From Macrostomum hystrix (taxonomy: Eukaryota; Animalia; Platyhelminthes), in the NCBI GenBank assembly GCA_950097015.1, contig CATNEN010000024.1, positions 1,798,001 through 1,862,000 on the forward strand: a stretch of 64,000 nt of DNA, in the 5' to 3' direction. Positions 980 to 63,712 of this stretch are shown one piece after another. The notes under the pieces are model-generated. The model worked only from the letters and a program-made list of their open reading frames with translations. It was not told the origin of the DNA and made no database searches. Both the position numbers and the translations under genes were made by a program. Each line of letters begins with the position of its first letter. Position 1 is the stretch's first letter.

Positions 980-3900
980 TGATTTCGACCGAACCTTCAT
1001 TACCATCCTGTTCTTCTTCAGTTGGAACTTCTTGATCCTGGGCCTAGAACAACGGGTTGGAAAATCTGCTGTGCGAAACTAAATTCTACATAATTTGCTT
1101 TATTGCTCAAGTATTGAAGTGAGCAAGTCAAGGGGGTAGAAGTGCACTGTCAAAACAGGGGAGCAGAAGGCAGTAGGGGAAAAGGGGATGAGAAGGCAGT
1201 GGGAGAATAGGGGATGAGAGCAGCAGTGGGAGAATAGGGGATGAGAGCCGCAGTGGGAGAATTGGTGATTAGAAGCAGTGGGAGAATAGGGGATGAGAAG
1301 GCAGTGGGAGAATAGGGATGAGAAGGCAGTGGGAGAATAGGGTATTAGAAGCAGTGGGAGAATAGGGGATGAGAAGGTAGTGGGAGAATAGGGATGAGAA
1401 GGCAGTGGGAGAATAGGGATGAGAAGGTAGTGGGAGAATAGGGGATGAGAAGGCAGTGGGAGAACATGGGATTAGAAGGCAATGGGACAATAGGGGATGA
1501 GAAGGTAGTGGGAGAATAGGGGATGAGAAGGTAGTGGGAGAATAGGGGATGAGAAGGCAGTGGGAGAATAGGGATGAGAAGGTAGTGGGAGAATAGGGGA
1601 TGAGAGCCGCAGTGGGAGAATTGGTGATTAGAAGCAGTGGGAGAATAGGGGATGAGAAGGTAGTGGGAGAATAGGGATGAGAAGGCAGTGGGAGAATAGG
1701 GGATTAGCCGCAGTGGGAGAATAGGGGATGAGAAGGTAGTGGGAGAATAGGGATGAGAAGGCAGTGGGAGAATAGGGATGAGATGTAGTGGGAGAATAGG
1801 GGATGAGAAGGCAGTGGGAGAATAGGGGATGAGAAGGTATTGGGAGAATAGGGATGAGAAGGCAGTGGGAGAACATGGGATTAGAAGGCAGTGGGAGAAT
1901 AGGGGATGAGAAGGTAGTGGGAGAATAGGGGATGAGAAGGTAGTGGGAGAATAGGGGATGAGAAGGTAGTGGGAGAATAGGGGATGAGAAGGCAGTGGGA
2001 GAACATGGGATTAGAAGGTAGTGGGAGAATAGGGGATGAGAAGGTAGTGGGAAAATAGGGGATGAGAAGGCAGTAGGAGAATAGGGGATGAGAAGGTAGT
2101 TGGAGAATAGGGGATGAGAGCCGCAGTGGGAGAATAGGGGATTAGAAGGTAGTGGGAGAATAGGGGATGAGAAGGTAGTGGGAGAATAGGGATGAGAAGG
2201 TAGTTGGAGAATAGGGGATGAGAGCCGCAGTGGGAGAATAGGGGATGATAAGGCAGTGGGAGAATAGGGGATGAGAAGGTAGTGGGAGAATAGGGGATTA
2301 GAAGGTAGTGGGAGAATAGGGGATGAGAAGGTAGTGGGAGAATAGGGATGAGAAGGTAGTGGGAGAATAGGGATGAGAAGGTAGTTGGAGAATAGGGGAT
2401 GAGAGCCGCAGTGGGAGAATAGGGGATGATAAGGCAGTGGGAGAATAGGGGATGAGAAGGTAGTGGGAGAATAGGGGATGAGAAGGTAGTGGGAAAATAG
2501 GGGATGAGAAGGCAGTAGGAGAATAGGGGATGAGAAGGTAGTTGGAGAATAGGGGATGAGAGCCGCAGTGGGAGAATAGGGGATTAGAAGGTAGTGGGAG
2601 AATAGGGGATGAGAAGGTAGTGGGAGAATAGGGATGAGAAGGTAGTGGGAGAATAGGGATGATAAGGCAGTGGGAGAATAGGGGATGAGAAGGTAGTGGG
2701 AGAATAGGGATGAGAAGGTAGTGGGAGAATAGGGGATGATAAGGCAGTGGGAGAATAGGGGATGAGAAGGTAGTGGGAGAATAGGGGATTAGAAGGTAGT
2801 GGGAGAATAGGGGATGAGAAGGTAGTGGGAGAATAGGGATGAGAAGGTAGTGGGAGAATAGGGATGAGAAGGTAGTGGGAGAACATGGGATGATAAGGCA
2901 GTGGGAGAATAGGGGATGAGAAGGTAGTGGGAGAATAGGGATGAGAAGGTAGTGGGAGAATAGGGGATGATAAGGCAGTGGGAGAATAGGGGATGAGAAG
3001 GTAGTGGGAGAATAGGGATGAGAAGGTAGTGGGAGAATAGGGGATGATAAGGCAGTGGGAGAATAGGGGATTAGAAGGCAGTTGGAGAATAGGGATGAGA
3101 AGGTAGTGGGAGAATAGGGGATGATAAGGCAGTGGGAGAATAGGGGATGAGAAGGTAGTGGGAGAATAGGGATGAGAAGGTAGTGGGAGAATAGGGGGAT
3201 GAGAAGGCAGTGGGAGAATAGGGGATGAGAAGGCAGTGGGAGAATAGGGGATTAGAAGGCAGTTGGAGAATAGGGGATTAGTAGCAGTGGGAGAATAGGG
3301 GCGCAGAAGGCTCTAACCAGAAAAAGCAGGCCTGTCCGCTGCCGGAGGCGGTGTGGTCGCGCAGCACGATCCCGGTGGTCTCAATGCACAGAGTGGACGG
3401 GCTGCCATCCTCCAACTGCAATTGGAGTGCAGGGGGGGGGGTAAAGGAATCGCACTCTGGAGAAAATATAATCGCAATGTTGAAGTCAAAATTTAGAGAA
3501 ATATTGTCTAGACGGAGCTCAGAAAACTACTGGGACAAGTCTATTGAGTACTACATCGATTCAATGGCTAGTTTCCTATTCAGCTAAAAGTACTGTTCAA
3601 TATATTTTGTATACCATCCCATACAATTTGGAATGTTCCGCACTCACCGTGACACGAAATTTCACTCGACCGTAGCCGTCCAGCCACTTCACATGGCTCA
3701 GAAACTGGTACTCGGCCCGGCTGGCCGGCAGGCCCCTAGAAACAGTGAGAGAGGTAGTCAGAGTATACAGGTAGTCAGAAGAGTAGACAAGTAGTCACAA
3801 GAGTAGACAAGTAGTCGGAAGAGTAGACAAGTAGTCGGAAGAGTAGACGGGTAGTCAGGAGAGTAGACAGGTAGTCAGAAGAGTAGACAGGCAGTCAGAA

Positions 3901-6900
3901 GAGTAGACAGGTAGTCAGAAGAGCAGACAGGTAGTCAGAAGAGTAGACAGGCAGTCAGGAGAGTAGACAGGTAGTCAGAAGAGTAGACAGGCAGTCAGAA
4001 GAGTAGACAGGTAGTCAGAAGAGCAGACAGGTAGTCAGAAGAGTAGACAGGCAGTCAGGAGAGTAGACAGGTAGTCAGAGTAGACAGGTAGTCAGAAGAG
4101 TAGACGGGTAGTCAGGAGAGTAGACAGGTAGTCAGAAGAGTAGACAGGTAGTCAGAAGAGTAGACAGTTGGTCAGAAGAGTAGACAGGCAGTCCGGAGAG
4201 TAGACAGGTAGTCAGAGTAGACAGGTAGTCAGAAGAGTAGACAGGCAGTCAGAAGAGTAGACAGGTAGTCAGAAGAGCAGACAGGTAGTCAGAAGAGTAG
4301 ACAGGCAGTCAGGAGAGTAGACAGGTAGTCAGAGTAGACAGGTAGTCAGAAGAGTAGACGGGTAGTCAGGAGAGTAGACAGGTAGTCAGAAGAGTAGACA
4401 GGTAGTCAGAAGAGTAGACAGGTAGTCAGAAGAGTAGACAGTTGGTCAGAAGAGTAGACAGGCAGTCCGGAGAGTAGACAGGCAGTCAGAGTAGACAGGT
4501 AGTCAGAAGAGTAGACAGGCAGTCAGAAGAGTAGACAGGTAGTTTCCTGTCAAGTCAAGTCAAGTCAAGTCAAGAACCAGTCAAGAGAGTAGACAGGTAG
4601 TCAGAGTAGACAGTTAGTCAGAAGAGTAGACAAGTAGTCAGAAGAGTAGACAGGTAGTCAGAAGAGTAGACAGGTAGTCAGGAGAGTAGACATGTTGTCA
4701 GAAAAGTAGACAGGTAGCGTGATCATTGAATAGGTAGTGAGATTAGTAGGCACGCGGTGATAAGTGGACAGGTGTTTTGGAGGCTGGTTAGTGAGAAGTA
4801 GGCAGCCGGTGAGCAGCCCAGGCTCACTTGAGCATGCGGTAGATGCTGGCCACCTCGGCGTCTATGCCAGGTCGAAGGTCGGCAAACAGAGCGTAGTTGT
4901 TCAGCGGGAAGCCGCGCTGGTGATCAAAGTCTCCGTGATGCGCTGAAGTGAATTTTTAATAGTCAGCCGGTGCCTTTGCAAATTACAGATTCGTCTGTCA
5001 ATTACTTGTCAATTACTGTCAATTGTCCAATAACTACACATTTTTCTTCAATCTCGCGTCATCAATTTTCTAACAATGACCGATCGGTTAAAATATCATT
5101 TTAAATCTTCAAGCAATCACCTATCAAATCACCTATCAATCTTTAATCAGCCATCTGTTAATCTTCAACCAGTCATATGTCAATCTTCAATCAGTCATAT
5201 GTCAATCTTCAATCAGTCATATGTCAATCTTCAACCAGTCATATGTCAATCTTCAACCAGTCATATGTCAATCTTCAATCAGTCATATGTCAATCTTCAA
5301 TCATTCATCAGTTAATATTTTAGAAATTCTCTGGCAATTATCAAACAATAATTTGTGCATCTTCATTAAAATTCTGAAAGCCAAGGTTAGCAATCTTTCT
5401 CTGGATGGGAGATCAGGCGAGTAACTCACACTGCAGCATCAGGGCAGCCAGCCGGGCCGCTTTGTCTCTGGGCACAGTGACCAGGCCAGCCTGAATGTCC
5501 TGTATCGCCTGCAGAAACACCTGCAAGCTAAATAGTTGAATAGTGGGATTAATTAATTGGAGAAGTGTCAGCATTGAATAAGCCCCCTATTAAAACCGTT
5601 TTTATCATGCATTCTAGCATTCGCCTAAATAAATACTTTCCTATCTATATAGATCGTATGCTCACCGAGTTGACTCAGACAGTTCGCGACAAGGATCGTT
5701 CGGATAGAAGCGAACGGCCAGGAATAGCTGGCAGGACTTCTCCCCAACCAGGTCAGACAGACCGCCGCCTGCGGGTCAGGGTGGGAGAAATTCAGGATGG
5801 AGGCTTGAATTTAGAAGGAATTTAGGAGGAAAGCTTGAATTTAGGAGGAAATTAGGAGGAAATTAGGAGGAAATTAGGATGAAAGCTTGAATTTAGGAGG
5901 AAATTCAGGATGAAAGCTTGAATTTAGGAGGAAATTCAGGATGAAAGCTTGAATTTAGGAGGAAATTCAGGATGAAAGCTTGAATTTAGGAGGAAATTCA
6001 GGATGAAAGCTTGAATTTAGGAGGAAATTCAGGATGAAAGCTTGAATTTAGGAGGAAATTCAGGATGAAAGCTTGAATTTAGGAGGAAATTCAGGATGGA
6101 AGCTTGAATTTAGGAGGAAATTCAGGATGGAAGCTTGAATTTAGGAGGAAATTCAGGATGGAAGCTTGAATTTAGGAGGAATTTAGGATGGAAGCTTGAA
6201 TTTACGAGGAATTTAGGATGGAAGCTTGAATTTAGGAGGAAATTCAGGATGGAAACTTGTGCTTTAGGACGAAAGTTACTTGAAAGTTAAAGTTAAAAGT
6301 TAAAAGTTAAAAGTTACTTGAAATGTGTTTAACGTTACTAGAAATTTCTGTTACATTAAAAATAATGAGGGGCATTTTAATTAATTTCTATACTGTTGAA
6401 GAATTAAAATATGAAATAAATAATTGAAATTTGGTTATTTCAGCAAAAATAAAGACTGGCTTAATCCAAAATTAAACTCTGAACAGTGCCTGTTAAAGTC
6501 AAAAAAGATCATAAAGCAATAGTAAGAGGCCGTTCGGGTGCAGATCTTGACGCAAGAAACTCAAGGCCTTCAGACTTAATTTCCTTTGAAGTGTTAAAAT
6601 AATGAAACAAGAGCTGCAGGAAATAGGTAAGAAGTGGTCCCTCGACAGCGCAAATGACAGACAGATAAGATGGCTGGCACTCAATTAGCAACTCAATTGA
6701 ACTCCGCACTGACTTTGAGTCCCATCTAATAGGTTTGATTAGCGGCATTACCGGCCAGGTGCATCCGAGTGAGCAGATGCCTAAGTTGACTACCCGAACC
6801 TTAAGTATACTTGCCACTGACCGGGCAAAATAATAACCTAAGAATTATTGACGCAATGATAGCTTTTAAGCATTGTTGACAGGAACCAAAGTTCCTCAGC

Positions 6901-9900
6901 TTCAAAGACATGTTCGCTGCAGTCCTAGTTTTCTTTGCAATAAAAACAATACCTGAAGTAAATAAAATGAGTCTTGTGGAAGTCCGACAAGACAGCGAAC
7001 AGTCCTGCATTTTAAATTCACCAAGCCTGGTCTATGACCTCAATAAAGCCTGGTCTATGACCTACACCAAGCCTGGTCTATGACCTACATCAAGCCTGGT
7101 CTATGACCTACACCAAGCCTGGTCTATGACCTACACCAAGCCAGGACTATGACCTACACCAAGCCAGGTCTATGACCTCCATCAAGCCTGGTCTATGACC
7201 TACATCAAGCCTGGTCTATGACCTACATCAAGCCTGGTCTATGACCTCAATAAAGCCTGGTCTATGACCTACATCAAGCCTGGTCTATGACCTACATCAA
7301 GCCTGGTCTATGACCTCAATAAAGCCTGGTCTATGACCTACATCAAGCCTGGTCTATGACCTCAATAAAGCCTGGTCTATGACCTACATCAAACCTGGTC
7401 TATGACCTACATCAAGCCTGGTCTATGACCTCAATAAAGCCTGGTCTATGACCTACATCAAGCCTGGTCTATGACCTACATCAAGCCTGGTCTATGACCT
7501 CAATAAAGCCTGGTCTATGACCTACATCAAGCCTGGTCTATGACCTCAATAAAGCCTGGTCTATGACCTACATCAAACCTGGTCTATGACCTACATCAAG
7601 CCTGGTCTATGACCTCAATAAAGCCTGGTCTATGACCTACATCAAGCCTGGTCTATGACCTACATCAAGCCTGGTCTATGACCTCAATAAAGCCTGGTCT
7701 ATGACCTACATCAAGCCTGGTCTATGACCTCAATAAAGCCTGGTCTATGACCTACATCAAGCCTGGTCTATGACCTACATAAAGCCTGGTCTAATACCTA
7801 CACCAAGCTAGGTCTATGACCTCCATCAAGCCAGGTCTATGACCTACACCAAGCCAGGTCTATGACCTACACCAAGCATGGTCTATGACCTACACCAAGC
7901 CTGGTCTATGACCTCAATAAAGCCTGGTCTATGACCTACATCAAGCCTGGTCTATGACCTCAATAAAGCCTGGTCTATGACCTACATCAAGCCTGGTCTA
8001 TGACCTCAATAAAGCCTGGTCTATGACCTACATCAAACCTGGTCTATGACCTACATAAAGCCTGGTCTAATACCTACACCAAGCTAGGTCTATGACCTCC
8101 ATCAAGCCAGGTCTATGACCTACACCAAGCCTGGTCTATGACCTCAATAAAGCCTGGTCTATGACCTACATCAAGCCTGGTCTATGACCTACATCAAGCC
8201 TGGTCTATGACCTCAATAAAGCCTGGTCTATGACCTACATCAAGCCTGGTCTATGACCTACATCAAGCCTGGTCTATGACCTCAATAAAGCCTGGTCTAT
8301 GACCTACATCAAGCCTGGTCTATGACCTACATCAAGCCTGGTCTATGACCTCAATAAAGCCTGGTCTATGACCTACATCAAGCCTGGTCTATGACCTACA
8401 TAAAGCCTGGTCTATGACCTACACCAAGCTAGGTCTATGACCTCCATCAAGCCAGGACTATGACCTACACCAAGCCAGGTCTATGACCTCCATCAAGCCT
8501 GGTCTATGACCTACATCAAGCCTGGTCTATGACCTACACCAAGCCTGGTAAATGACCTACGCCAAGCCTGATATTAAACTTCCATAGAACTTATCAAAGC
8601 ATAAAAGTTTGTTTAACTTACGGCAGCACTTGACCAGGGAGTGTACCGTCTTTCTAACGTTCACCCATTGCTGAAATAGTTTTAAATAGATTGATTGTCT
8701 GAAAAAAATCTTTCAAATTTTAGCAATAATATCAAATGCCACCAAGCTGGGACTCACCAGAGTTTTCCGCGTGTCCATGTACTTCAGACCGAAAAACTGC
8801 TGCTCAGGCACGCCAATTGAGTTAAGCACAGTGCGTAGCAGTTCTTGGCCCTTGTGATTGCCCTGTGGAGTGACATTTTTGCGTGCAATGAGCACTCGAA
8901 TGAATAGAATGGATTGATAATCTATCAAATAAATAAAGGAATAGAATGGATTGCTAATCTATCCAATAAATAAAGGAAAGGAATGAATTGCTAGTCTATC
9001 CAATGGATGAAGGAATTGAATGGATTGCTAATCTATCTAATGGATGAGGGAATAGAATGGATTGCTAATCTATCGCATGGTTGAAGGAACAGAATGGATT
9101 GCTAGTCTATCCCATGGGTGAAGGAACAGAATGGATTGCTGATCTATCCCATGGATAGCCGATCCCTCGGCTAAAGGACCAAGTGAATCGCTAGTATATC
9201 GCTTTGATGAGTGATGGCATTATAGAATTTTCGCCATTGACGGAGAGAAAAATAAGTGCAAGCTCGGATTCGCAGGACAGCAGGTCGAACTGTCAGCCAG
9301 TGTGGCAGCAGTCAGCTGATGCGCGCAGGCCAGGATCGCATTTCAATCTTTGGCTAGAAGAAGTGGCTGCGAGTCGCAGGCAAGAAACCAGTTCCAGATT
9401 GCAGCAAATGTGATTCAACTGGTTCAGCTGAGTCGCGCTAGGGAGAATTCTGTGACTTCCTGACACATCCGATCTCGAATAGCGCTTGGATGGCAAGAAA
9501 GTGTCAGTGCGGAGGCAGCAGTGTCGGATGCAGTGCTGGCGGATGCGGAACGGACTGCAATATGCAATGCGCCTTCCTTCCACTGTCTCTAGTGGCATTT
9601 GCGCTGTGTAAATTTCCCATAGTCCTTTCCATCCTCCTAAAGGCTGCAGTATCGCGGTTGCTTTTTTGAAAAGCTGTTTATATTGTTCTTGTCAAACAAG
9701 TGAAACTATTGAAAGAGCACAGGGGTACTTCAAATGCCCACATCATTTGTTCTGTATCCCCCAAATTATTCAACCATTCGCCGTGAAAATGCAGAACAGA
9801 ACACAGGCAAAAAAATTCTGCTCTACCTGATGAAAGAACTTCCAAAATCACAAAAAATCGGTGCTGACTCGGGTGGCTTTGGTTTAGATGGTGGACTTTC

Positions 9901-12900
9901 TCACGAAAATCGGTCTTTTGGTTTGGGAGGTATTATGAAATTGCCTCTCCGTGCTGTTTTCCTGGGGGAAAAATTGCGTGGTATTTTTACTGGTAATCAA
10001 TTGTGCATGTGCTGACGACCCGGAGTTACTTGATAGCTCATTATTTGAGTCGACATTCTGTATTTGCGATGTAATTTTTAGAGGTTTTTCTACCAAGTCC
10101 TTACATTGACTGTCGATAAGCTGCAGTTGCAGACATCTGGGACTCGACAAAGCGCGCCTAGTTTAGCTAATATGGGAAGAAAGTGCATTCAGAGGCAGTG
10201 TTTATACAACCGCTTCTTTGCTCTTCACTGCCGAGCAAATTAGTTGAATCTGAGAATCGGGGGAACAATGCATTGCTGGGGCTGAGGGGGGGGGCAGACT
10301 ACACAGTCGGGGGCCGAGCAGAAATTGCATCCGGTACACGGGGCCAGGTTTGGCCCGACATCAACTGTGCTACTGCATCAGACTAAAATAAACCCATTCT
10401 TTTTCTATTGAGATTACTGGCTGGGCCGTATCACAATAGCCTGCTTGGCGCAATAGTATTTGATTAGAAAACAAAGGCGAGTTAGTAAAGTCGACTTTGT
10501 CAAGCTTCAGCAAAAGCTAAGGAAAAACTCTAATTACTGGATACAGTGAATGAGCTAAGCAGATGTGTCATTTCTGTGACTCCCCTGCCTTCAGCAAGGT
10601 CTTCCATTTTCGTCTCTGTCTGCACTGTCCTCACCTGTGTCCTAATTCTCCTCACCTGTGTCCTAATTCTCCTCACCTGTGTCCTAATTCTCCTCACCTG
10701 TGTCCTAATTCTCCTCACCTGTGTCCGTCTTGTCCTTACTTGTGTCTGTATTATCCTCACCTACATGTCTGTATTATCCTCACCTATTTTAATTATTCTC
10801 TCCTACCTGTATTCTGCTCACCTGTCTGTAATATTTTCACCTGTTTCTGTCTTGTATTTACCTCTCCTGTATTATACTCCCACTGGCATCTGTCTTAGCA
10901 TCGCAGAGATGGCTCTTAGCACCAAAGTACTATATTTTGGCATCCAAGCAGTTCAGCTGGTCAAGCAGACAAAAATGTTATCTGATCCGGAAAAAGAAGC
11001 ATTTCTGCACAAGGTGTACTTTTCGCGTGGGTTAGTTTGAGCACGAGTTTAAAGCCAAAGTCGAACCTTTTCGATCAATCTGCCCCCCAACTTGTTTGAC
11101 TAGACCCGGTTTCGGTTTAAAGTCCCTGGCGAGGGATTTGGGAGAAGCTGTTGCCAACAGTCGGGTGCCTCTCACGCGAGAGTGCAACATTTAAATAAAA
11201 TGCCAAGCAGGTGAGTCAACAGCACAACTATAAGGGGAAAGCTTCCGTCTAGATCCCCACCAAACTCCCGTTTTCTAGACCAGGCTCATGTGCTGTCCCG
11301 CAAATACACTGGGGAGATCTGATCTGGGCAATTCTGATGCAGTAAACACTGTTAACTGTCGATTCGCTTAACCATTTTTTAGTTTATTTACATTAGAAAG
11401 TTAGATGAGTTCTACATTTTCGCTGAAGCCTGTGTGCCTGAGTTTCACAGCTTTGGTACCGTGCTTTACAGTTGGAAGACCAAAAGTTGCATTTCAAATA
11501 GCAACATTTTATTTTCCTTGAATATTCCAAAACATTCAACCAGCCGATCAACATGAAAATCCAGAACCCGGGCTAAAAGTTTTCGAAATTTCCTATGAAA
11601 CAACTTCTAGATCACAAAGCATCGGCATCATCTTTCTGCTCAAAAATTTTCATTATCTAACTATGTCGGCCATTATCGTTGATTAATAATAATTAATAAT
11701 AATAATTGATTACACCTGCCCCAATCGGGTCAGATATGCAGCCAACAGCCCAGCCGCAGCCATTGCGCAGCGCATCTAAGACTGCGTACAGCTGTTCAGT
11801 CCACGGACTGGGGGGACGCCACACCCACCTTCAATTATCCCAGCTAATACTGGTACCCATTTAACAGCTGGGTGAACTGAAGCACTGCAGAGTTAAGTGT
11901 CTTGCTAAAAGACACAAATTGTTTCAGTAGTGTCGGGAATCGAACCCCCGACCTTCAAGTCGTGAGCCCGACGCTCTAACCATTAGGCTACAACCAATCA
12001 GCTTCAAAGCCTCAAATAAATGCTTTCCAAGCTAAATAAATGTCACCAAGTTGATTGTATAGTATCTTTTGTATTGTTAATTTTAATTATTAAACAAATA
12101 TGGATTCGCCATAGAGGTACGAGTATATACAGAGCAATGTCAGTTGTCCTTGTCACCAGGGTCTTCGACAGGAATCGCTGAATATCTCGACGACGCTGAC
12201 GTCGGAAGGCTTTGAAAGTTGATAGTAAAGGGCGGAAAACTCTGATCCATATGGTGGACTTTCAGGGGGTCGATGGCAGAGCGGTTAACGCGTTTGCCTC
12301 TCGCGCCACGGTCCTTAAGGTCGATTCCGCGGCGAGGCCACATTCATTTGAGGCGCAGCCGCGGAGAGAAGGCTTGGGGGCTTGTCGCGCAATTTACGCC
12401 CTTGAGGGCCAACCTCCAAAGCACAGTGGTGGTGTACACTGCCCGCATATGAGAAAGTCAAGGTAATGTACACGCCTTGTGTGTGAGCGTATGCCTGCGT
12501 AAAGTATCTGTGTGTGTGTGTGCTCAGGAGTCAGTGAAAAGGGCAGAATTGCCTCCTCGCTGGATGCGGGTCTAGTGTCACCGAATAATGTTGCCAATTC
12601 CTTTTATTATTAAAAAACCAAATCGTACGAACCTTCCAACATAAATTCGAAAAGTTGCATTGTCGAAAACTTGATATATTTTCCTGTATTCAAACTTTCT
12701 AAAGTTTCATTTCAATCAAAAAGTTCTAAAATTAAATTGGTTTAATTTCTGAAACTTTTATTTACGCAAAGCTTGTCCTGCTGCTACTCAAGCTCAGCTG
12801 TTAGTTAGGAGAAGACGATCAATTAGAGTACCGAAGTTCGCGGACAGGAGCCGAGAGTAGGTAAGGCATAATTACAAGCTGCCTGAGGGCGGCCGCTATG

Positions 12901-27182: not shown

Positions 27183-30100
27183 TTATAGCGCATTGCAGGT
27201 GCTGCTGTGGGTGGGCTTTCGAAAATGCTGCTGTATCTTCGCTTCCTCCTCCTCCTGTTGCTGTTCTTGTTCTTGTTCCAATGGTGGATCCATCGCTTGT
27301 CTATCGTGTCGGCCCAGTAGGAAGTAAGTCCTCATCAGGCCTTTGCCTTTGATGTTCACCTCGCCACGGCCCTCGAATTTGAAGCCACCATCGCTATCGA
27401 CTAACGCTCTAAAATAAAGTTCATAACGTTCTTTGCCTAGCCAATTCAAAGTTCAAAATGAAGTAGGCCAAATAACAAAGATACTAATAGGAAAGGTTAA
27501 TTGGATAGGCGCCTTGAGATCGACACAGATTGAGTCGATATACTATGAGTCTACTCACTATGAACATTGGTGAGTAGTGAGTAGAGATGTCGATGAAAGA
27601 ATGAAGGTTGAGTTAGGTGGGTGTCAGAGTGAGGTGGGTGTCGGAGTGAGGTGGGTGTCGGAGTGTGGTGGGTGTCGGAGTGAGGTGGGTGTCGGAGTGG
27701 GGTGGGTGTCGGGGTGAGGTGGGTGTCGGAGAGAGGTGGGTGTCATGGCATCCATCCACAGACGCGGACTGACTCACGCGTAAGACTCCGGGCTGACGTG
27801 AATCCGGCTGGGCAATCCGTGGCTCTCCATGCGCGAGGCCACATTGACCGTGTCGCCGAACAGGCAGAAACGGGGCATCTTGTCGCCCACAACGCCTGCT
27901 ACAGTTGGTCCGGTGTGAATCCCGACGCGAATCTGGGAGTTTATGTGAGTGATGTGAGAGGATTGCAACAAATAATCCCTCATAAAAGTTAAGATTCAGC
28001 AGATGCGACTAGAAATTGGCTCCTGAATTTCTAATTAAACTTAGAAATCAGCGAACCTGCAGCGGCTGCCCCGTAACCGGAGAGCAGACCTTTCCCGCGG
28101 CCTCCAGCATGTCCATAGCCTGCTCAGCGACCATCTCCGCGTGCAGCTGAGTGCGCTCGGGCACACCACCGACCACCATGTAGGCGTCACCTATCGTCTC
28201 CACTTTGTAGACTTTATTCACCTCCGTGGCTTGGTCGAAAAGAGAATAAAGGCTGTTGAGCATGTCCACAACGTCCATCGGTGTGCACTGGCTCGCAATG
28301 TCCGTGAAAGTAACAATGTCCGAGAACAGTATGGTGCAGATGTCGTACTTTTCTGAAAGCGAGGTTAGCTTGCGTAAATTAGAAAGAGAAAGGGACTAGC
28401 GGTTATATAAAGTCAGATTTTTTAGGGTCGGATGGTGGAGTGGCATCGCGTCCGATTCTCGCACTAGTTCATGAGTTCGAATCCGCAACGAAGCCCCATT
28501 TGTTTGGGACACAGCCGCGGAGAGAAGGCTTGGGGTTTGTCGGGCAATGCATATGCCCGTAGGCCAACCCCAAGGTAGGATGATAGGAAATTCAGGACAG
28601 ATACACACACCCTGTGTGAGCGTGTGGCTGCATAACGCAATCTTTCTGCCTGTATTTAAGGTCAGTGGAATGGGCAGAATTGCCAAACACACTGGAGTCA
28701 AGGCCGCAGTGCCCGGAGACAGGGTTTGGGCTTGCAGTCGCTCTGTTTCGCCCCTTGGCTACATACCAGCTTATAAGCGACAGATTTTCAAAAGTAATTC
28801 TCTCAGATGCACTCTAATGATGTGAGAAGTCTTTGTCCGAAAAATCTCGAACTCTTTGTTCACTCGTACCGGCTTTGACCTTCTTGCCATCCAGCAGCTG
28901 CTTCGCCACCTTCGCAGGTAGCATCTGGGACAGCAGGGTGTAGGTCTTATGCTTCTCGACCTCAAGCTCAGCCGTCATGCGCCGCATCTGATAGGTCATC
29001 TCGTCCAGCTGCCGGCTGATGCCGATCTCGGCCAGCCGCTGCTGATTCACCTGCAGCAGCTCCCTTGTGACGTCATAGAGCGGCAGGTCGGACATGCAGA
29101 GCCGCTTCTCCATCATCTCGCTGAGCGTGAGCACCCGCGGCGAGCAGAAGAACAGAAAAAGATGCGTGTCGTCCATGTAGATCATTTGGCCTGCGATGGG
29201 ATTCCGGGGCTCATCTCGGCGCATTGTCTAATTAATTCCCCGCAGCGGACTCTTTCCCGCTGTCATTAATCCTCTTTAAAACTGCGCCAGCGCCAGGACG
29301 ATGGGAGATGATGAGAAAGAAAGCAATTTTCCACTGAACGAATTATCTCCAAGGCCGGTCAGGGTTTTTTCACTGTCATTTGCGAATCCCGAAATGAGCA
29401 GCGCCGAATTCTGAGTCTCGAGCCAGGTCTAATCACTTAATTAGAATGCGCGTGAGGAGATTAGCGAAGGAACAAAGGAATAGCTCTGGGCATAAAGATT
29501 TGGAGCTTGATTGTACTCAACAGTCTTGTTTGTGAACTCTAATTCAACTTGATTGAAGAAACTCACTAGAAATTGGTCTTTAGCAGCTATATGGCAACTT
29601 CAATATGATCATCTGATCAGTGCAGTCTGTCTTTTGTGCTAAAAAAATCGAATTTGTGATGTATAATGACGTTTTTCAGGTCCGAAACGTTTTGTGGACA
29701 TCTATTATACTTCTTATGAAGTCAAATGTCTATGGGTTTTTAAGGCAATAACTCCCACAGATTTACCGTCCAGAATAGTATAGTATTCTAGATTATTATA
29801 ATAACTATATTATAAGAACTATATTATTATAGTATTCAAATAATATAGTATGTAGTAATATAGTATAGTAGAAATAATACGTATAGAGGCACAACACCAC
29901 AAACCCACAAGCATGAAAAAATGAAAAGCGTTTGTCGACGGTAGTACGTAGAATTCATCACAACGCCTAATGACGAGAAAGCAAGGCTGTTTAAAATGTG
30001 AGTGAGGCCAACGGATGGGGCATTTGAAATAGCCTTAAGCGCCTCCAGAATCAGCTGCGACTCAATGCTGAACTAGCCATCGCTCACCCTTCAGCAGTAA

Positions 30101-33100
30101 AGACGTCTCAGGCGATAAGTCATTCGGACCTTTGCGCAGCAGCAGAGTGAAGGCGCTGTTGAGAAAGCGCCGAATAAAGCTGGCTGAGAAAGCCACTGGC
30201 GGGTTGACTAGGTCGCACACCTCTGTGAGGCGCACCGGTTTGGTTGGCGAGCGCAACGCGTGACAGACCGTCTGGATGCCGACGCCGCTCTGCCGCACCA
30301 GCAGCTGGTCGTCGAACACAATATGATAAGGAAAGTGGCGAATGAACGAGCGCACGGTGATGTGGCTGCTCGTTGGGCACCAGGGCTGGAAGTAGTCCTC
30401 CAGGCTCACCACCAGCGATCCGGTCGATGTGAAGGTGACGAGCAGCTTCGCGTGAGTTCGATAGCGACTCTCAGCCGGAAAGTCGGTCTCCACGTTGAGC
30501 ACCTTCAGTTGGATTTCTGTACCGAAGATCTCTTTGGCAACTGTAGTCAGCATGCCTGGACAATGGTCATAAAATTGTACACGGAAATTGCAATCCATGA
30601 CTGTTCATTATCAAGCTATGCGGAAAACCAACAGGTATAAATCACCTTTAATCCAGCTAGTCAGGCCCGACCTGGCGCTGTAGTAATGGAGAATGAAGTC
30701 TCCGGAGTCCTCGTAGTTGCAGCTGCAACAGTTTATTATCGCAGGTTTCTGTTAGGCTTCTGTCAGGCGAGAGTACGATGTGCCAGGCCTCTCAGGGCCA
30801 GAAAAAATTCTATTTTTAGACATTAGACATTAAGCATTGACATCACAACGAGCTTCTTTAAACAACTTTGTGCCCGTTAGTGAGCGTCGGACTAAGGATT
30901 TGAAGGTCGGGAGTTCGATTCCCGACTCCACTGGAAAAATTTGTGTCCGTTAGTAAGAAACTTAACTCTGCATTGCTTCAGTTAACTCTGCTGTTAGATG
31001 GGTATCGACATCAGCTGGGGTAATTGAGGGTGGTTGTGCGTCTGTCCCCCCAGTCCATGGACTGAACAGCTGTAGCTGCGGCCATAAAAAAATATATTAA
31101 TTTTTAATACTTATTTTTATAATTATTAATATATCCGTTTTCTTACATTTTAATTAAAGAAGCATAAAGCTCGGATTTGAAGTATTGGCTAGAGATTGAT
31201 CCTACATCTTAATGGCTAAACTTGTACTCGAAACTGATAACGCCTTACTAAAACATCGGTTTTGCAGATACAATGGATCCTTCTCAGCGTACGAGCTTGA
31301 GATGACATAGAACATATACGAGCGTAGATGATATTCATTTCATTTTTTGTGTGAATGTTCCGTTCTTTAAAGTTATTTTACTTCACATCAATACATTTTA
31401 CCTGTCTCAAAACACAAAAGCTTTCGCTTGTTGCCATGTGCATGTTCAAAGCATTTTATTATGTAGTTAAGGTAAAATAAAGCCTGCATAATTTAAACAC
31501 TTTTGCACCTTTAACAGTAGACTCTCACGAAAATCTTCATCCGGTTTGGCAGGTATCGTGAAGTTGGCAGTGGTTATTTAAAATTCCCCCTGATCTTTCC
31601 AATAGCGTGGTCGTTGTGCTGTTAATAGTTCATGTATTGAAGGAGTTAAAAAATGCTGCAGAACCCACCTGAACGATGGTGGCACCATGCCTTTATTGTC
31701 AATCTGCAGGTAGTCGTGCAGCGAGTCCAGATTGCGAATAAACTTCTTCAGGTCCTGACCGAGCGTGTAGATCATCTTGTCGTAGCCGTGTCGCCTGAAG
31801 TACTTGAAGAAGTAGCGACCGAACATTTCATAGAGGTCGTCCTTGCTCATGCCTGCATGGATAGCCATTAATTGCGACTTCAGTTCTTAATTATCGCTCA
31901 TGATAGGGGTAGCCAGTGCCAGATCGGTTAACGCGTCTGCACTTCGCACCAAGGTCCCTGAGCTCGATCTGCGGCGAGGCCCCATTAAATTGGGCGCAGC
32001 GACGGAGAGAAGGCTTGGCGGCTTATCGTGCAATTTACGCCTTTGAGAGCCAACCTCCAAGGCACAGTGGCAGTGTACACTGCCTGACGATGAGAAAGTC
32101 AGGGCAGATGTATCACCTGTGTGAGTGTATGCCTGCGTACAGTAGATCTGTGTGCGTGTGTGCTCAAGAGTCAGCGAAATGGGCAGAATTGCCTCCTCGC
32201 TGGCTGCGGGTCTAGTGTCATAGTGTCAAAGATATATTGCCATTGCCCAAAGCCCGCCTGCAATAATTATTATTATAACATGGATACAGCACAATAGACA
32301 CACATTATTAATTCTCAAAAAATGGATATTTTTTGTTCTCTAGGCAATTTGTTAACCAGATGCTAGAAGCATCCGCTGATTTCTTCACGGACCATTGTTT
32401 ATTGGATAAACGAGACCATGTACAGCGCATCTGTCGGGTCATCTGTCAGAGTTGTTATCAGACAGAACGATGGGGATTTAATGATAGACTCAATGCCCTA
32501 TTTTTAACGATTGCACAGAGGAAACTGAAGCATAGGCCTTGGTTGTTCGGTTCCCTGTAACTAAAGCAGAGCAGGTGGAACTGGTGACACAATGCCTTTT
32601 GAGCAAGAGTGCAGGAATTTTTAGATTTTTCTTCAGCAGGGGTAAAGAAGTCACACGAAAGGGTACGTGGTTATTATCATTCACTTGCACAAGAAATAAT
32701 GGATCAGTTTCACTTCATCAGAGGTTCACTTTGCTGCAGCCCAACAACACCAAAATTTCACTTTCCTGAAGTTTCACTTCCCTGAAGTTTCACTTCCCTG
32801 AAGTTTCACTTCCCTGAAGTTTCACTTCCCTGAAGTTTCACTTCCCTGAAGTTTCACTTCCCTGAAGTTTAACTTCCGTGAAGTTTCGCTTCCGTGAGTT
32901 TCACTTCCTTGAATTTCCAGTTCACTAAACTAACACTTCTCTGAATTTATTTTTCACTGCCGTAACGCTGAGCAGCAGGAGGAACAGAGATCTCACCCAG
33001 CTCTTTCCTGGCCGCTTCAACCATGCCGTAGAACATTGTGTCAGGATAGCAGTGGAACATGCGAAAGTCGCGGTTATCGTCCAGGTTGCAGCTCATTCTG

Positions 33101-34434
33101 GAGGTTATTATCGAATTTAAACAAAAAAAATTTTTCGGGGTATTATAAAAGCGCGCTAATTCTGCTGAACTCATAAAAATCACGAAATGCTGCTAATAAA
33201 GCTGACTTACATGACATTCTGCCAAGCATTCTTTGACGGCTGGTCCAGCATCATCTCCTTGAAGCAGATGTGGATGTGGCCGTACTGAAATAGTTTTTAA
33301 GTGTTGAGGAAGGCAAAGTTTGTCTTGAAGTTCCTGCAACGATGCTACTCGACTCTCTAGCTAAAATTCTACACGACGTTGTTGCTACGATTCTACTCGA
33401 CGCTGTTGCTACGATTCTACTCGACGCTGTTGCTACGATTCTACTCGACGCTGTTGCTATGATTCTACTCGACGCTGTTGCTACGATTCTACTCGACGCT
33501 GTTGCTACGATTCTACTCGACGCTGTTGCTATGATTCTACTCGACGCTGTTGCTACGATTCTACTCGACGCTGTTGCTACGATTCTACTCGACGCTGTTG
33601 CTATGATTCTACTCGACGCTGTTGCTACGATTCTACTCGACGCTGTTGCTATGATTCTACTCGACGCTGTTGCTACGATTCTACTCGACGCTGTTGCTAC
33701 GATTCTACTCGACGCTGTTGCTATGATTCTACTCGACGCTGTTGCTACGATTCTACTCGACGCTGTTGCTACGATTCTACTCGACGCTGTTGCTACGATT
33801 CTACTCGACGCTGTTGCTACGATTCTACTCGACGCTGTTGCTATGATTCTACTCGACGCTGTTGCTACGATTCTACTCGACGCTGTTGCTACGATTCTAC
33901 TCGACGCTGTTGCTATGATTCTACTCGACGCTGTTGCTACGATTCTACTCGACGCTGTTGCTACGATTCTACTCGACGCTGTTGCTATGATTCTACTCGA
34001 CGCTGTTGCTACGATTCTACTCGACGCTGTTGCTACGATTCTACTCGACGCTGTTGCTATGATTCTACTCGACGCTGTTGCTACGATTCTACTCGACGCT
34101 GTTGCTATGATTCTACTCGACGCTGTTGCTACGATTCTACTCGACGCTGTTGCTACGATTCTACTCGACGCTGTTGCTATGATTCTACTCGACGCTGTTG
34201 CTACGATTCTACTCGACGCTGTTGCTACGATTCTACTCGACGCTGTTGCTATGATTCTACTCGACGCTGTTGCTACGATTCTACTCGACGCTGTTGCTAC
34301 GATTCCACTATCAAGTATTTGCTTTTTCTTAGGCTAAAATAGTTTCATCACAGCAAAGCAAACTCAAATAAAATTATTACGACAGAGAAATATGCTATTA
34401 GTAGCTCTACATATCTCGTGAACATGCTTACCAT
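27183..34434 (-). CDS. Soluble guanylate cyclase beta subunit, GUCY1B2-like (H-NOX, PAS/HNOBA, coiled coil, cyclase, CaaX)
   Basis: Phase-consistent exons: 34432-34434 (ATG then GTAAGC), 33211-33284 ([12 protein letters not shown]..), 32997-33097, 31669-31852 (..LDSLHDYL.., heme-ligand His), 30646-30722 (HYYSAR, YxSxR motif), 30088-30555, 28870-29190 (NQQRLAE..LLSQMLP..VA.QL), 28057-28352 ([19 protein letters not shown]), 27778-27932 ([26 protein letters not shown]), 27183-27408 (..[15 protein letters not shown]). Confidence 0.95.
27615..27745. repeat. 17-bp minisatellite (GTGAGGTGGGTGTCGGA)
   Basis: About 7 units in the last cyclase intron. Confidence 0.93.
28425..28690 (+). mobile_element. 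Diverged family-B SINE copy
   Basis: GGGTCGGATGGTGGAGTGG..GAGTTCGAATCCG head; GCCGCGGAGAGAAGGCTTGGGG and GGTCAGTGGAATGGGCAGAATTGCC shared with other copies; sequence differs after TTGCC. Confidence 0.7.
30876..31084 (+). mobile_element. CORE-like SINE family A copy (trimmed at both ends)
   Basis: GTTCGATTCCCG B box; TTGTGTCCGTTAGTAAGAAACTTAACTCTGC; CCAGTCCATGGACTGAACAGCTGTA matches the 11684-11995 element. Confidence 0.85.
31906..32277 (+). mobile_element. Family-B SINE copy in cyclase intron
   Basis: tRNA-like head, full body, GCCTCCTCGCTGGC at 32191-32204, TAGTGTCA duplication, (ATT)n tail. Confidence 0.88.
32755..32925. repeat. 16-bp minisatellite (TTCACTTCCCTGAAGT)
   Basis: About 10 units. 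Confidence 0.93.
33365..34310. repeat. 24-bp minisatellite (TTCTACTCGACGCTGTTGCTA(C/T)GA) in cyclase intron 1
   Basis: About 39 units; the 331-aa ORF 33342-34337 is its translation. Confidence 0.97.
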
Positions 34435-35272: not shown

Positions 35273-35690
35273 GGGGGTGTCGGTGGCGTAGCGGTTAACG
35301 CGTTTGCCTCTCGCACCAAGGTTCCTGAGCTCGATTTCGCGGCGAGGCCACATTTATTTGGGGCGCAGCCGCGGAGTGAAGTCTTGGGGGCTTGTCGTGC
35401 AATTTACGCCCTTTAGAGCCAGACTCCAAGGCACAGTGTGAGTGTACACTGCCTGGCAATGAGAAGATAAGAGCAGAAGTACACAGAACTACAGTGTGAG
35501 CGTATGCCTGCGTACAGTATGGCCAGAATTGGCAGGTTCGCAGCCGCGTAGAGAAGGCTTGGGGCCTCGTACTATTTACAAAATAAATTACTTTGTAAAG
35601 GTGATGGCGTGCCCAACTAACTTTGTAAGGGAGAGAGTGCATAACTGCCTAACGATTAGAAAGTCAGCGCAGATTATCGATTTTTGCCAA
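35273..35690 (+). mobile_element. Composite family-B SINE: head and body followed by a second, more diverged partial body
   Basis: Best-preserved head GGGGGTGTCGGTGGCGTAGCGGTTAACGCG..GCTCGATTTCG; body motif restarts at ~35543 (GCCGCGTAGAGAAGGCTTGGGG); HDV-like core absent. Confidence 0.75.
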
Positions 35691-54370: not shown

Positions 54371-54592
54371 ATGCCGAAAGTCCTGTCGAGCGTGCTCGCA
54401 GCCTCCAGTGCTCTGGCACTGCTGCTGCTTGTGTTCCAGTCCGAGTCGGTTGTTGCTCTGCCTGCTTCTCACCCAACGTCCGAGACCGTTTTCGAAACCG
54501 CTAAACGACAGGCGGCTCCGTTTCGCTATTACACCGGACAGATGTATGAGTTCAGGAAGAAGGTGAGCGGTCAGGTGTCAAAGCACTTTTAG
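54371..54592 (+). CDS. Putative secreted peptide (neuropeptide-like) precursor, exon 1
   Basis: Signal peptide MPKVLSSVLAASSALALLLLVFQSESVVA, then KR-QAAPFRYYTGQMYEF-RKK. Donor GTGAGC at 54563; candidate exon 2 from 55222 (KARFRADDAVRDY) and exon 3 from 55330; the unspliced frame stops at 54592. Confidence 0.65.
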   Translation: MPKVLSSVLAASSALALLLLVFQSESVVALPASHPTSETVFETAKRQAAPFRYYTGQMYEFRKKVSGQVSKHF

Positions 54593-54644
54593 AGCGGCTT
54601 CTTGAGCAGTACTCTGTGTGGCAGAGTAAAGATAAATCAGTGCA

Positions 54645-55102
54645 GTGTCAGGGTAAGCAGTGTCAGGGTAAGCAGTGTCAGGGTAAGCAGTGTCAGGATA
54701 TGCAGTGTCAGGGTAAGCAGTGTCAGGGTAAGCAGTGTCAGGGTAAGCAGTGTCAGGATATTCAGTGTCAGGGTGAGCAGTGTCAGGGTAAGCAGTGTCA
54801 GGATATGCAGTGTCAGGGTAAGCAGTGTCAGGGTAAGCAGTCAGGGTAAGCAGTGTCAGGATATGCAGTGTCAGGGTAAGCAGTGTCAGGATATGCAGTG
54901 TCAGGGTAAGCAGTGTCAGGGTAAGTAGTGTCAGGGTAAGCAGTGTCAGGGTAAGCAGTGTCAGGGTAAGCAGTGTCAGGGTAAGCAGTGTCAGGGTAAG
55001 TAGTGTCAGGGTAAGCAGTGTCAAGGTAAGCAGTGTCAGGGTAAGCAGTGTCAGGGTAAGCAGTGTCAGGGTAAGCAGTGTCAGGGTAAGCAGTGTCAGG
55101 GT
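54645..55102. repeat. 15-bp minisatellite (GGGTAAGCAGTGTCA)
   Basis: About 30 units with GGATATGCAGTGTCA variants. Confidence 0.96.
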
Positions 55103-60601: not shown

Positions 60602-61413
60602 GTGGGCAGGTGCAGTTCCGGCTGATTCGTCCTATACCATTTGTCTGTGAAAAAATCATGGGCGTGTTGAATCGTTTTTAAATATATTTTCAATCTCTTC
60701 AATATCTACAATATGAGCTCATTTAAAAATCCAGTTCATGTATTACGCTGGTGCATAATTTAAACTCCCCGTAACAAATAATACTTTGTTTAAATCACAG
60801 TAAAATTTCTCTAATTAAAACTATTTTAATATGTAAGTTTTCCTTTTCTCTAAAAAGTAAGTTGATTTACTTCGCAAATCACTTTACAGTAGTCAAAAAA
60901 AAATTTTTTTAAACTTCTAAGATATATTTATTGTTAAAACCTTCAAGTTTTGTTTAAATACAGTCGCTTTGCCAGCCCGAAAACAACTCACAAGTGCCGC
61001 ATTGAACGAAAAATTCAATACCTAAAGTGAAAAATAAGCATTTTGAATGGAATTATTGTTTTAATTCTCAATCATTTACACAAGTGAACTTTATCTGACG
61101 ATGTAGATGCGATAATTATTGATTAGCGGTTATTTGAAAACTAATAGAGACGAAGTTTATTTGAATGGTATAATTTTGTGTCGTATGCAGGGAGGCAGTG
61201 TAAAGTTAAATTGAAAGAAATGTGAAAGGGTGTAGCGCGTACTCGGCATGCGGAGAGATATTTATTCCAAATGTAAATCTCGATTTCATTATGGCATCAT
61301 TTCGACGAACAGAAACTGTACAACAAAATAAGAGTATGGGACAAAGTGACACAGTCACAATACGCTACTGCAAAATCAACATAAACTTGTAGTTTATGAA
61401 GTAAAGCACTCGT

Positions 61414-61755
61414 AATAATAATAATTGTAGGAGGGATGTGGGCATCATTTGGTGACACTAGACCCGCAGCCAGCGAGGAGGCAATGCTGCCCATTTCGCT
61501 GACTCCTGAGCACACACGCACACAAATACTGTACGCAGGCGTGCACTCCAACAGGTGTGTACATCTGCCCTGACTTTCTCATAGTCAGACAGTGTACAAT
61601 ATTCACTGTGCCAAGAAAGTTTGCCCTCAAGGGCGTAAATTGCACAAAGCCTTCTCTCCGGAGCAGCGCCCCACATAAATGTTGCCTCACCACGGAATCG
61701 AGCTCAGGGACCTCGGTGAGACCGGCAAACTCATTAACTGCCCCGCCACTCACCC
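61414..61755 (-). mobile_element. Family-B SINE copy (repeated at ~62095-62411 and ~62749-63065)
   Basis: Reverse strand: GGGTGAGTGGCGGGGCAGTTAA..GCTCGATTCCG head, shared body, HDV-like core, (ATT)n tail on the first copy only. Confidence 0.88.
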
Positions 61756-61830
61756 TCCAATAAAACGCCATACAGATAAATAAACGCAAGGCTTAGAAGC
61801 TGTGTAAATTTAACTCATGTGTGAATCACC

Positions 61831-62058
61831 CTGTGGCGGCGCAGGGGGGGGGGGGGCGGGGGGGGGGCGGGCTGCCCCCGGGTGACCACCCCTCACCACC
61901 CTCAGGGGGTGACCACCCACTTAAAAAAATTTGGTACTTTACCATATTTGTTCAAAAGTGTGGTCACCCCATGGGGCATGGGGGGTGGTCACCTGAGACC
62001 TCAGGGGGGGTGACCACCCAACCACCGCCCCCCAGCTGGCGGTCCTGCGCCGCCACTG
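61831..62058. mobile_element. Non-autonomous hAT-type MITE, copy 1 (228 bp)
   Basis: 15-bp TIRs CTGTGGCGGCGCAGG / CCTGCGCCGCCACTG (1 mismatch); 8-bp TSD GAATCACC at 61823-61830 and 62059-62066. Confidence 0.88.
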
Positions 62059-62486
62059 GAATCACCACACAGAATGTGGGCATCAGGAGGGATGTGGGCA
62101 TCATTTGGTGACACTAGACCCGCAGCCAGCGAGGAGGCAATGCTGCCCATTTCGCTGACTCCTGAGCACACACGCACACAAATACTGTACGCAGGCGTGC
62201 ACTCCAACAGGTGTGTACATCTGCCCTGACTTTCTCATAGTCAGACAGTGTACAATATTCACTGTGCCAAGAAAGTTTGCCCTCAAGGGCGTAAATTGCA
62301 CAAAGCCTTCTCTCCGGAGCAGCGCCCCACATAAATGTTGCCTCACCACGGAATCGAGCTCAGGGACCTCGGTGAGACCGGCAAACTCATTAACTGCCCC
62401 GCCACTCACCCTCCAATAAAACGCCATACAGATAAATAAACGCAAGGCTTAGAAGCTGTGTAAATTTAACTCATGTGTGAATCACC

Positions 62487-62712
62487 CTGTGGCGGCGCAG
62501 GGGGGGGGGGGCAGGGGGGGGCGGGCTGCCCCCGGGTGACCACCCCTCACCACCCTCAGGGGGTGACCACCCACTTAAAAAAATTTGGTACTTTACCATA
62601 TTTGTTCAAAAGTGTGGTCACCCCATGGGGCATGGGGGGTGGTCACCTGAGACCTCAGGGGGGGTGACCACCCAACCACCGCCCCCCAGCTGGCGGTCCT
62701 GCGCCGCCACTG
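62487..62712. mobile_element. hAT-type MITE, copy 2
   Basis: Same TIRs and the same TSD GAATCACC. Confidence 0.88.
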
Positions 62713-63140
62713 GAATCACCACACAGAATGTGGGCATCAGGAGGGATGTGGGCATCATTTGGTGACACTAGACCCGCAGCCAGCGAGGAGGCAATGCTGC
62801 CCATTTCGCTGACTCCTGAGCACACACGCACACAAATACTGTACGCAGGCGTGCACTCCAACAGGTGTGTACATCTGCCCTGACTTTCTCATAGTCAGAC
62901 AGTGTACAATATTCACTGTGCCAAGAAAGTTTGCCCTCAAGGGCGTAAATTGCACAAAGCCTTCTCTCCGGAGCAGCGCCCCACATAAATGTTGCCTCAC
63001 CACGGAATCGAGCTCAGGGACCTCGGTGAGACCGGCAAACTCATTAACTGCCCCGCCACTCACCCTCCAATAAAACGCCATACAGATAAATAAACGCAAG
63101 GCTTAGAAGCTGTGTAAATTTAACTCATGTGTGAATCACC

Positions 63141-63365
63141 CTGTGGCGGCGCAGGGGGGGGGGGGCAGGGGGGGCGGGCTGCCCCCGGGTGACCACCCCT
63201 CACCACCCTCAGGGGGTGACCACCCACTTAAAAAAATTTGGTACTTTACCATATTTGTTCAAAAGTGTGGTCACCCCATGGGGCATGGGGGGTGGTCACC
63301 TGAGACCTCAGGGGGGGTGACCACCCAACCACCGCCCCCCAGCTGGCGGTCCTGCGCCGCCACTG
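63141..63365. mobile_element. hAT-type MITE, copy 3
   Basis: Same TIRs and the same TSD GAATCACC. Confidence 0.88.
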
Positions 63366-63712
63366 GAATCACCACACAGAATTATTATCAAATACTGACT
63401 ACTCAATATCTGTTGTAGGATTTAATTCATGACTCTACTGCCAAATTATCTAAAATCCAAGTACAGCTTAGGTTAGCAACGAATTAAATTAAGATCCATT
63501 ATACACTTTTACCATGTAGTTGCACTTGCTGGCTCAACAATATCATGCCACACTCGCAAATAGATAGACAATATGGTGTTGCTTATGCGGCTTGAATCTG
63601 AATGCCGCCATTTGAGTGCAAGTGTACCGGGCGCGCTGTGATTGGCGATACCATATGGGGGTATATATCTATAATCAAGCATACTAACTATGGGCCTCAG
63701 GGCAGTGGCTTT

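Follow-up and report, generated by a model that had tools for sequence, protein, structure and literature searches.

A SINE family of the flatworm Macrostomum hystrix with a predicted three-way-junction 3' domain and a probably coincidental match to the HDV ribozyme

We analyzed a 64,000-nt stretch of the genome of the flatworm Macrostomum hystrix (contig CATNEN010000024.1 of GenBank assembly GCA_950097015.1, positions 1,798,001 to 1,862,000; G000:C24:1798001-1862000 in our numbering). We will call this stretch the window. It contains copies of a short, dispersed, non-coding repeat of ~350 nt that carries the 14-mer GCCTCCTCGCTGGC. An earlier note on this DNA, made from the sequence alone, had described the repeat as a tRNA-derived short interspersed element (SINE) with the core of a ribozyme like that of hepatitis delta virus (HDV) near its 3' end. 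We found that the repeat is a SINE whose head is tRNA-like and whose tail is predicted to be structured, from a family that we did not find described in the literature that we searched. We consider it likely that the proposed ribozyme core corresponds to the last (3') third of an ordinary, non-autonomous SINE, that the 3' domain of this SINE is a fold recognized by the reverse transcriptase of a long interspersed element (LINE), and that the match to HDV is coincidental.

The assembly that we searched is eukaryotic, with 220 Mb in 42 contigs. An initial scan gave 2148 candidate copies of the repeat, and the exact 20-mer GCCTCCTCGCTGGCTGCGGG, which spans the 14-mer, has 2161 matches across both strands and many contigs. 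Identity among young copies is 97-100%. At least 18 copies have target-site duplications of 11-16 bp, and there are (ATT)n tails and scattered 5' truncations among the copies. Given the target-site duplications, the (ATT)n tails, and the thousands of dispersed copies, we conclude that the repeat is a SINE. We found no prior description of the family in the literature that we searched, which included a text search for k-mers from the SINE.

As judged from an alignment of 35 copies, the SINE consists of, from 5' to 3', a tRNA-like head, a body of ~180 nt, a GT-rich segment of ~30 nt, and a 3' domain of 89 nt that is followed by the (ATT)n tail. The head begins with GGGGGGTGAGTGGCAGAGCGG and contains A-box-like and B-box-like promoter motifs (TGGCAGAGCGG and GTTCGATTCC), which are spaced as in a tRNA. 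The earlier note is supported in that the repeat is a SINE with a head that resembles a tRNA. But no tRNA is recognized in the head by ARAGORN or, at E up to 10, by the tRNA model of Rfam, so it is just the promoter boxes that justify the label “tRNA-derived.”

Some variants of the SINE are informative. In a subfamily with the junction CCTGTGTGAGYGTRTGCTCAGGAGTCAGCG, the ~30-nt segment with GCCTGCG (the proposed 5' strand of the ribozyme's P1 helix) is missing and the 3' domain is intact; it is found at 152 or more dispersed places, of which we fetched 6 examples. In a mini-variant (L053), the head is joined straight to the 3' module. Another, rare variant is defined by a 9-nt deletion (TGTGCCATT or similar) and is found at 12 places in the genome, which correspond to about 6 independent loci: 3 of the places are in a tandem array in the window, 6 are within one minisatellite, and 3 are elsewhere. 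For comparison, the undeleted 27-mer GTGTCACCAAATGATGYGCCAYTGCCC, from what we will call hairpin B, is found at 801 places.

The 89-nt module, which runs from CAGGAG to CUCCUG (L004:1478-1566, minus strand), is predicted to fold into a three-way junction with a minimum free energy of -45 kcal/mol, and the centroid structure is identical to the minimum-energy structure. Shuffled sequences average -27.9 kcal/mol (z = -5.56), and none of 200 shuffles was as stable. In the predicted fold, CAGGAG pairs with CUCCUG to form the closing stem. Hairpin A has the stem CAGCGA/UCGCUG around GGGCA-GAAU-UGCCU, and hairpin B has GCUGCGGGU/GCCCGCAGC around AGUG/CAUU and CAC/GUG, with the loop CAAAUGAU. The strands that join the three helices are just 1, 0, and 1 nt long. 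The 14-mer contributes UGCC(U) and UCGCUG to hairpin A as well as the first G of hairpin B, and what had been proposed as the ribozyme's P1' forms the 5' side of hairpin B. The best-conserved 20-nt windows of the SINE are at positions 261-300, within the module (majority fraction of 0.98, versus 0.89-0.97 elsewhere).

The 89-nt junction most likely serves as the domain by which a LINE reverse transcriptase recognizes the SINE. The promoter boxes suggest that RNA polymerase III would transcribe the SINE from its head. By analogy to other SINEs, a LINE reverse transcriptase of the stringent type would then recognize the folded 3' domain and the (ATT)n tail (PMC4176376, PMC3747384, PMC5786205). 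The duplications, tails, and truncations that the copies show are those that target-primed reverse transcription yields.

The closest parallels that we are aware of are the tRNA-related SINEs with structured tails, such as UnaSINE1 of the eel and its partner UnaL2, along with the 3' tails of LINEs from zebrafish (PMC4176376, PMC3747384, PMC5786205). These share with our SINE a tRNA-like head with internal A and B boxes, which in our SINE are box-like motifs; a body that is followed by a folded 3' domain (a predicted fold in our SINE) right before a short tandem-repeat tail; and target-site duplications, 5' truncations, and thousands of dispersed copies. There are also differences. Their folded domain is a single stem-loop, instead of a predicted 89-nt three-way junction; the tail of our SINE is (ATT)n; and among the LINEs that we examined, we did not find a partner with a homologous 3' end.

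The SINE copies and related features in the window are listed here, with scores from R1, a covariance model of the three-way junction, for the 3' modules.

12265..12612 (+): SINE copy with the proposed ribozyme core, which shares ~79% identity with a young copy from the genome and has a truncated or degenerate 3' end
12493..12499 (+): GCCTGCG, the proposed 5' strand of P1, within the GT-rich ~30-nt segment
12523..12615 (+): 3' module of the 12.5-kb copy (R1, 47.5 bits), without the 3' strand of hairpin B, which it has lost
12551..12564 (+): the HDV-like 14-mer, in which one base is substituted (GGA for GGC)
28425..28780 (+): single-copy relative of the SINE, old and divergent, with CAGATTTT on either flank
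28654-28761 (+): module of the divergent relative (R1, 21.3 bits); GCCAAACACACTGG replaces the 14-mer
31906..32277 (+): SINE copy, ~81-86% identical to young copies, with an (ATT)n-like tail
32163..32263 (+): three-way-junction 3' module (predicted) of the 32-kb copy (R1, 77.6 bits); exact 14-mer at 32191-32204
35283..35520 (+): partial SINE copy, with head and body and without the 3' module
61413..61758 (-): SINE unit 1 of the tandem array, of the 9-nt-deletion variant; (ATT)4 at 61414-61425 and the 14-mer at 61469-61482
62085..62414 (-): SINE unit 2, without a tail, which continues directly into the spacer; 14-mer at 62125-62138
62739..63068 (-): SINE unit 3; 14-mer at 62779-62792
61429..63382 (-): array of about 3 tandem units, each 654-656 bp long, which are 99.4-100% identical

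The 14-mers are where the earlier note had reported them: exact at 32191-32204 on the plus strand and in the three units of the array on the minus strand, and with one mismatch at 12551-12564. Each unit of the array comprises one SINE, of the rare deletion variant, and a GC-rich spacer of ~307 bp. The spacer contains a long inverted repeat (GGTGACCAC...GTGGTCACC), which has weak matches to microRNA-precursor-like families in Rfam (E of 0.02-0.15, far under the gathering scores). The array is probably a recent local segmental duplication.

In the HDV ribozyme, P3-L3-P3' is followed by P1' (GCCGGCT), the GG of P1.1, P4, and then GAA and P2' (PMC10377752). As the earlier note had stated, our 14-mer is the same as P3-L3-P3' of HDV: it is identical at 14/14 positions to the sequence printed in PMC10377752. 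It can form a 3-bp P3 that closes a 7-8-nt L3 of the UCCUCGC type; the predicted junction pairs the same bases elsewhere. Within the window, we found 9 matches to the 14-mer with at most 2 mismatches, versus 0.4 expected by chance. Across the genome, the 14-mer occurs at 13 places outside of a recognized SINE context. These comprise nine SINE copies with mutations, a relic that is present as a single copy, and three unrelated GC-rich stretches (L094, L101, and L102) that lack P1' and GG. Any given 14-mer is expected about 1.6 times by chance in 2 x 220 Mb. Because one or two chance occurrences are expected, and because such an occurrence could then be multiplied by retrotransposition, the identity of the 14-mer needs no special explanation. 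It is probably a coincidence that was copied about 2000 times.

The single-copy relic (L096:337-430, minus strand; G000:C30:3434471-3434651) has the same 14-mer and flanking sequence, an A-rich end, and an intron-like context. The 7-bp stem of its hairpin differs (ACCGUCG/CGACGGU), whereas the loop that it encloses is similar (CCAAAAUGAUU).

We compared the SINE family to each of the other parts of an HDV-like ribozyme. The proposed P1 can be drawn in the main subfamily. As the earlier note had described, GCCUGCG (at 12493-12499 in the 12.5-kb copy) can pair with UGCGGGU to form 7 bp, 3 of which are G-U; in an alignment of 58 copies, 94% of the cells are paired, with no covariation. The 5' strand of this helix is missing from the 152 or more dispersed copies of the shorter subfamily. 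P1.1 is absent: TGCGGGT is followed by CT instead of GG. This had been raised as a caveat about the window's copies, and it holds throughout the family. A genome-wide pattern of the 14-mer (with one N), 7 Ns, and GG found 7 places, each of which is either a SINE copy with mutations or a sequence unrelated to the SINE; TGCGGGT followed by GG is seen in just one SINE copy among these. At no non-SINE locus in the genome do P1' and GG come after this P3-L3.

An HDV-type P2 with J4/2 (C-N-R-A) is also not a feature of the family. The pairing that had been proposed, GGGCAGCATT with AATGATGCCC (9/10), does exist in the three tandem units. But AATGATGCCC follows CCAA only in the 9-nt-deletion variant (12 places versus 801), and the 32-kb copy and the ground state of the family lack this P2 partner. 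The ground state's only option for P2 is GGGCAG/UUGCCC, which is preceded by GCCA. The two central pairs of P2 are formed in just 5% of the cells from the 58 copies. In the 12.5-kb copy, the proposed GGCAGAATT and AATGTTGCC are present, but the partner strand is a different, non-homologous, and mutated segment of the truncated tail.

If the SINE's transcript were cut at the predicted first nucleotide of the ribozyme (G227), then the promoter-bearing head would be separated from the tail product, so copies should start at position 227. Among 62 copies, 47 of the alignments start at positions 1-24 and the other 15 starts are scattered over positions 51-264; none of them start cleanly at 227. A single copy starts near 226, and degenerate SINE sequence extends further upstream. 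Because the majority of copies extend over the full length, starting at the head, the RNA that was retrotransposed was uncut.

Covariance models for known ribozymes did not match either. We found no match to the Rfam models HDV_ribozyme, CPEB3, drz-Agam, or HDV-F-prausnitzii in the window or in 4 copies of the SINE, at E up to 10; these models are narrow, which makes this negative result weak evidence by itself and supportive at best. At Rfam's gathering scores, no ribozyme family was found in the window, and a search with RF00094 over the whole genome found nothing at E up to 1. Also, the HDV-like helices are predicted to contribute -9.8 kcal/mol (P1 and P3) or -10.5 kcal/mol (P2, P3, and P4), with -15.5 kcal/mol for P2 and P3 in the deletion variant. 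The pseudoknot-free fold of the same region is predicted to reach -39 to -43 kcal/mol, and values of -43 to -45 kcal/mol are reached in the competing non-HDV fold.

HDV-like ribozymes are found at the 5' ends of non-LTR (long terminal repeat) retrotransposons such as R2, RTE, and L1Tc/NARTc (PMC6765202, PMC3185411). Our SINE resembles these in having P3-L3-P3' within a retrotransposon, and in that it allows a P1-like pairing and a short one like P2 to be drawn. In contrast, the SINE lacks P1.1, a conserved J4/2 or P2, and a match to a covariance model; and its motif is near the 3' end, with copies that do not start at the predicted cut. Based on P1.1, P2 and J4/2, position, and the covariance models, we rejected the assignment to the HDV-like class, and we did not confirm the ribozyme core that the earlier note had proposed.

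We also considered hammerhead ribozymes, which are found in Sm-alpha of Schistosoma and in retrozymes (PMC6765202, PMC7761336). Like Sm-alpha, our family is a SINE-like repeat of a flatworm, and at one locus in the window it is in tandem. But the predicted junction has almost no unpaired bases, unlike a hammerhead: strands of 1, 0, and 1 nt leave no space for the cores CUGANGA and GAAA. Rfam gave no match to a ribozyme either, and we rejected this reading as well. Furthermore, the array in the window is a single, near-identical local duplication that includes the 307-bp spacer; it does not reflect how the family is organized.

If the 3' domain is not a ribozyme, it might have no structural function at all. 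It could be the inherited 3' sequence of a young and fast-amplifying SINE, with the (ATT)n tail alone being important and the junction being incidental. We think that this is rather unlikely, but several observations point in this direction and weigh against a recognition fold. The three-way junction is a purely thermodynamic prediction. In the 58 copies, there is no covariation beyond that of shuffles for the junction's helices or for those of the HDV model, where the earlier note had suggested looking for it; none is expected, because SINE copies decay neutrally after insertion. Conservation along the element is fairly even, at 0.93-0.99. On a separate point, it is unusual for HDV's most conserved part to be matched at 14/14 positions, which counts against treating the match as a coincidence.

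Two single-copy relatives of the module also bear on the fold. In the relative at 28654-28761, hairpin A can still pair, with a change from C-G to U-A, and the bases at the position of HDV's L3 are unrelated. This lone pair, which seems to be compensatory, could be explained by two CpG decays, and the fold of this relative is not unusually stable (z = -0.74). Together with the relic at L096, it hints that pairing was kept while bases changed, but CpG decay or chance could explain this, so we view these relatives as weak support.

We also did not find a partner for the proposed recognition domain among the LINEs that we examined. We listed the best 150 matches to RVT_1 and read the 3' flanks of 22 reverse-transcriptase loci (L061-L082). 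The LINE 3' ends fell into four readable tail groups, (AAT)n, (GAA)n, (AG)n, and (CAA)n, and 3 further loci have no recognizable simple-repeat end. None of the 3' ends that we examined is similar to the SINE's module, whether by BLAST, by Smith-Waterman with shuffles (z of 1.6 or less), or by the covariance model R1. And when we searched for segments of the module in a non-SINE context, with three IUPAC patterns, we recovered only mutated copies of the SINE.

The (GAA)n LINE family has a hairpin, GGGCATCATCTGATGCCC, shortly before its tail.

Two other families in this genome have (ATT)n tails. A second SINE family (L056:775-1172, plus strand; G000:C7 near 1,696,100-1,696,500) has a head that resembles a tRNA much more closely, and its target-site duplication, CTCTTTGAAAG, is 11 bp long. 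The 3' end of this family is GGGTCTAGTGTCA(ATT)n, and this 13-mer is also found in hairpin B; the corresponding 19-mer end is found at 79 places in the genome, none of which is near the RVT_1 matches among the best 150. A third family, seen in the window at 11707-11830 (minus strand), ends with GGGGCAGGTGTAATCA(ATT)n. L059 has a variant of this end, L040 ends with AGGACAGGTTTAATCAAC, and both have GTCCATGGACTRAACA upstream. A further run in the window, (AAT)4 at 36589-36600, has an unrelated 3' end.

These families suggest that several non-autonomous elements use one (ATT)n-type LINE. Because other families also end in (ATT)n, a LINE that uses such tails probably exists in this genome. On the other hand, the second SINE family shares only the 13-mer and the (ATT)n tail with ours, which favors a 3' domain without a structural function. 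Three observations argue for a functional fold instead: its stability relative to shuffles (z = -5.56), the near-absence of unpaired bases at the junction, and the persistence of an intact module both in the subfamily that lacks the P1 strand and in the mini-variant with just the head and the module. We favor the view that the 3' domain is recognized by a LINE reverse transcriptase.

The earlier note had also suggested that the SINE captured the 5' ribozyme of a LINE and disabled it. In this scenario, the 14-mer and its flanks would be a relic that an ancestor of the SINE acquired by template switching and then re-used in the fold of its tail. The perfect identity to HDV's P3-L3-P3', along with the wobbled 7-bp P1 and the short P2 (GGGCAG/UUGCCC) that can be drawn in the main subfamily, are consistent with this. 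But outside of the SINE, the 14-mer occurs at about the rate expected by chance, and it is never followed by P1' and GG. Also, hairpin A can pair in the relative at 28654-28761 despite unrelated bases at L3, and the segment with the P1 strand is missing from a whole subfamily. We consider a relic to be very unlikely, and we found no support for the capture of a LINE ribozyme.

A more specific version is that a captured, HDV-like ribozyme from the 5' end of a LINE was rebuilt as the three-way-junction recognition module, and that the intact 14-nt P3-L3 is its fossil. If true, a catalytic RNA fold would have been turned into a protein-binding tag. We consider this idea to be very improbable.

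Finally, a non-canonical HDV-like ribozyme that lacks P1.1, is active, and cuts the SINE's transcript at G227 is suggested by motif resemblance alone, and we dismiss it as extremely improbable, given the absence of P1.1, the confinement of P2 and J4/2 to rare deletion variants, the 47 of 62 copies that are full length despite a cut that would split the head from the tail, the lack of a covariance-model match, and a competing fold that is more stable by about 30 kcal/mol.

Some other features of the window and the genome deserve mention. Five long minisatellite arrays lie at 3663-4500, 6881-8500, 33204-34400, 54536-55200, and 55429-56441 of the window, with periods of 20, 23, 24, 15, and 31 bp, respectively, and up to 67 units. 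The mechanically predicted open reading frame at 33342-34337 falls inside the array with the 24-bp period. Elsewhere in the genome, a pair of loci (L030:804-1398 and G000:C38:4081433-4081685) contains minisatellites that derive from the SINE. One has a 29-bp unit from positions 238-265 of the SINE, and an array with a 39-bp period contains the hairpin-B loop of the deletion variant. The window also contains a 612-amino-acid open reading frame (56525-58363, minus strand) with RVT_1 and RT_RNaseH domains, which is the pol gene of an LTR retrotransposon, and a 918-amino-acid open frame (46851-49607, minus strand) with three PKD domains, which probably represents exons of a host gene.

Non-autonomous elements that carry ribozymes are already known, namely NARTc and Sm-alpha (PMC6765202), so even if a ribozyme were confirmed in this SINE, it would be a variant and not a new category. 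Our results are also a caution: a perfect match to 14 nt of the HDV core, when amplified 2000-fold, resembles conservation, yet it is not evidence for a ribozyme. As we interpret it, the significance of the finding is small, in that it adds one more SINE family, whose 3' domain is predicted to be Y-shaped and whose tail is (ATT)n. If the partner LINE is found, then the 89-nt junction would lend itself well to studies of template recognition by the reverse transcriptase of a stringent LINE.

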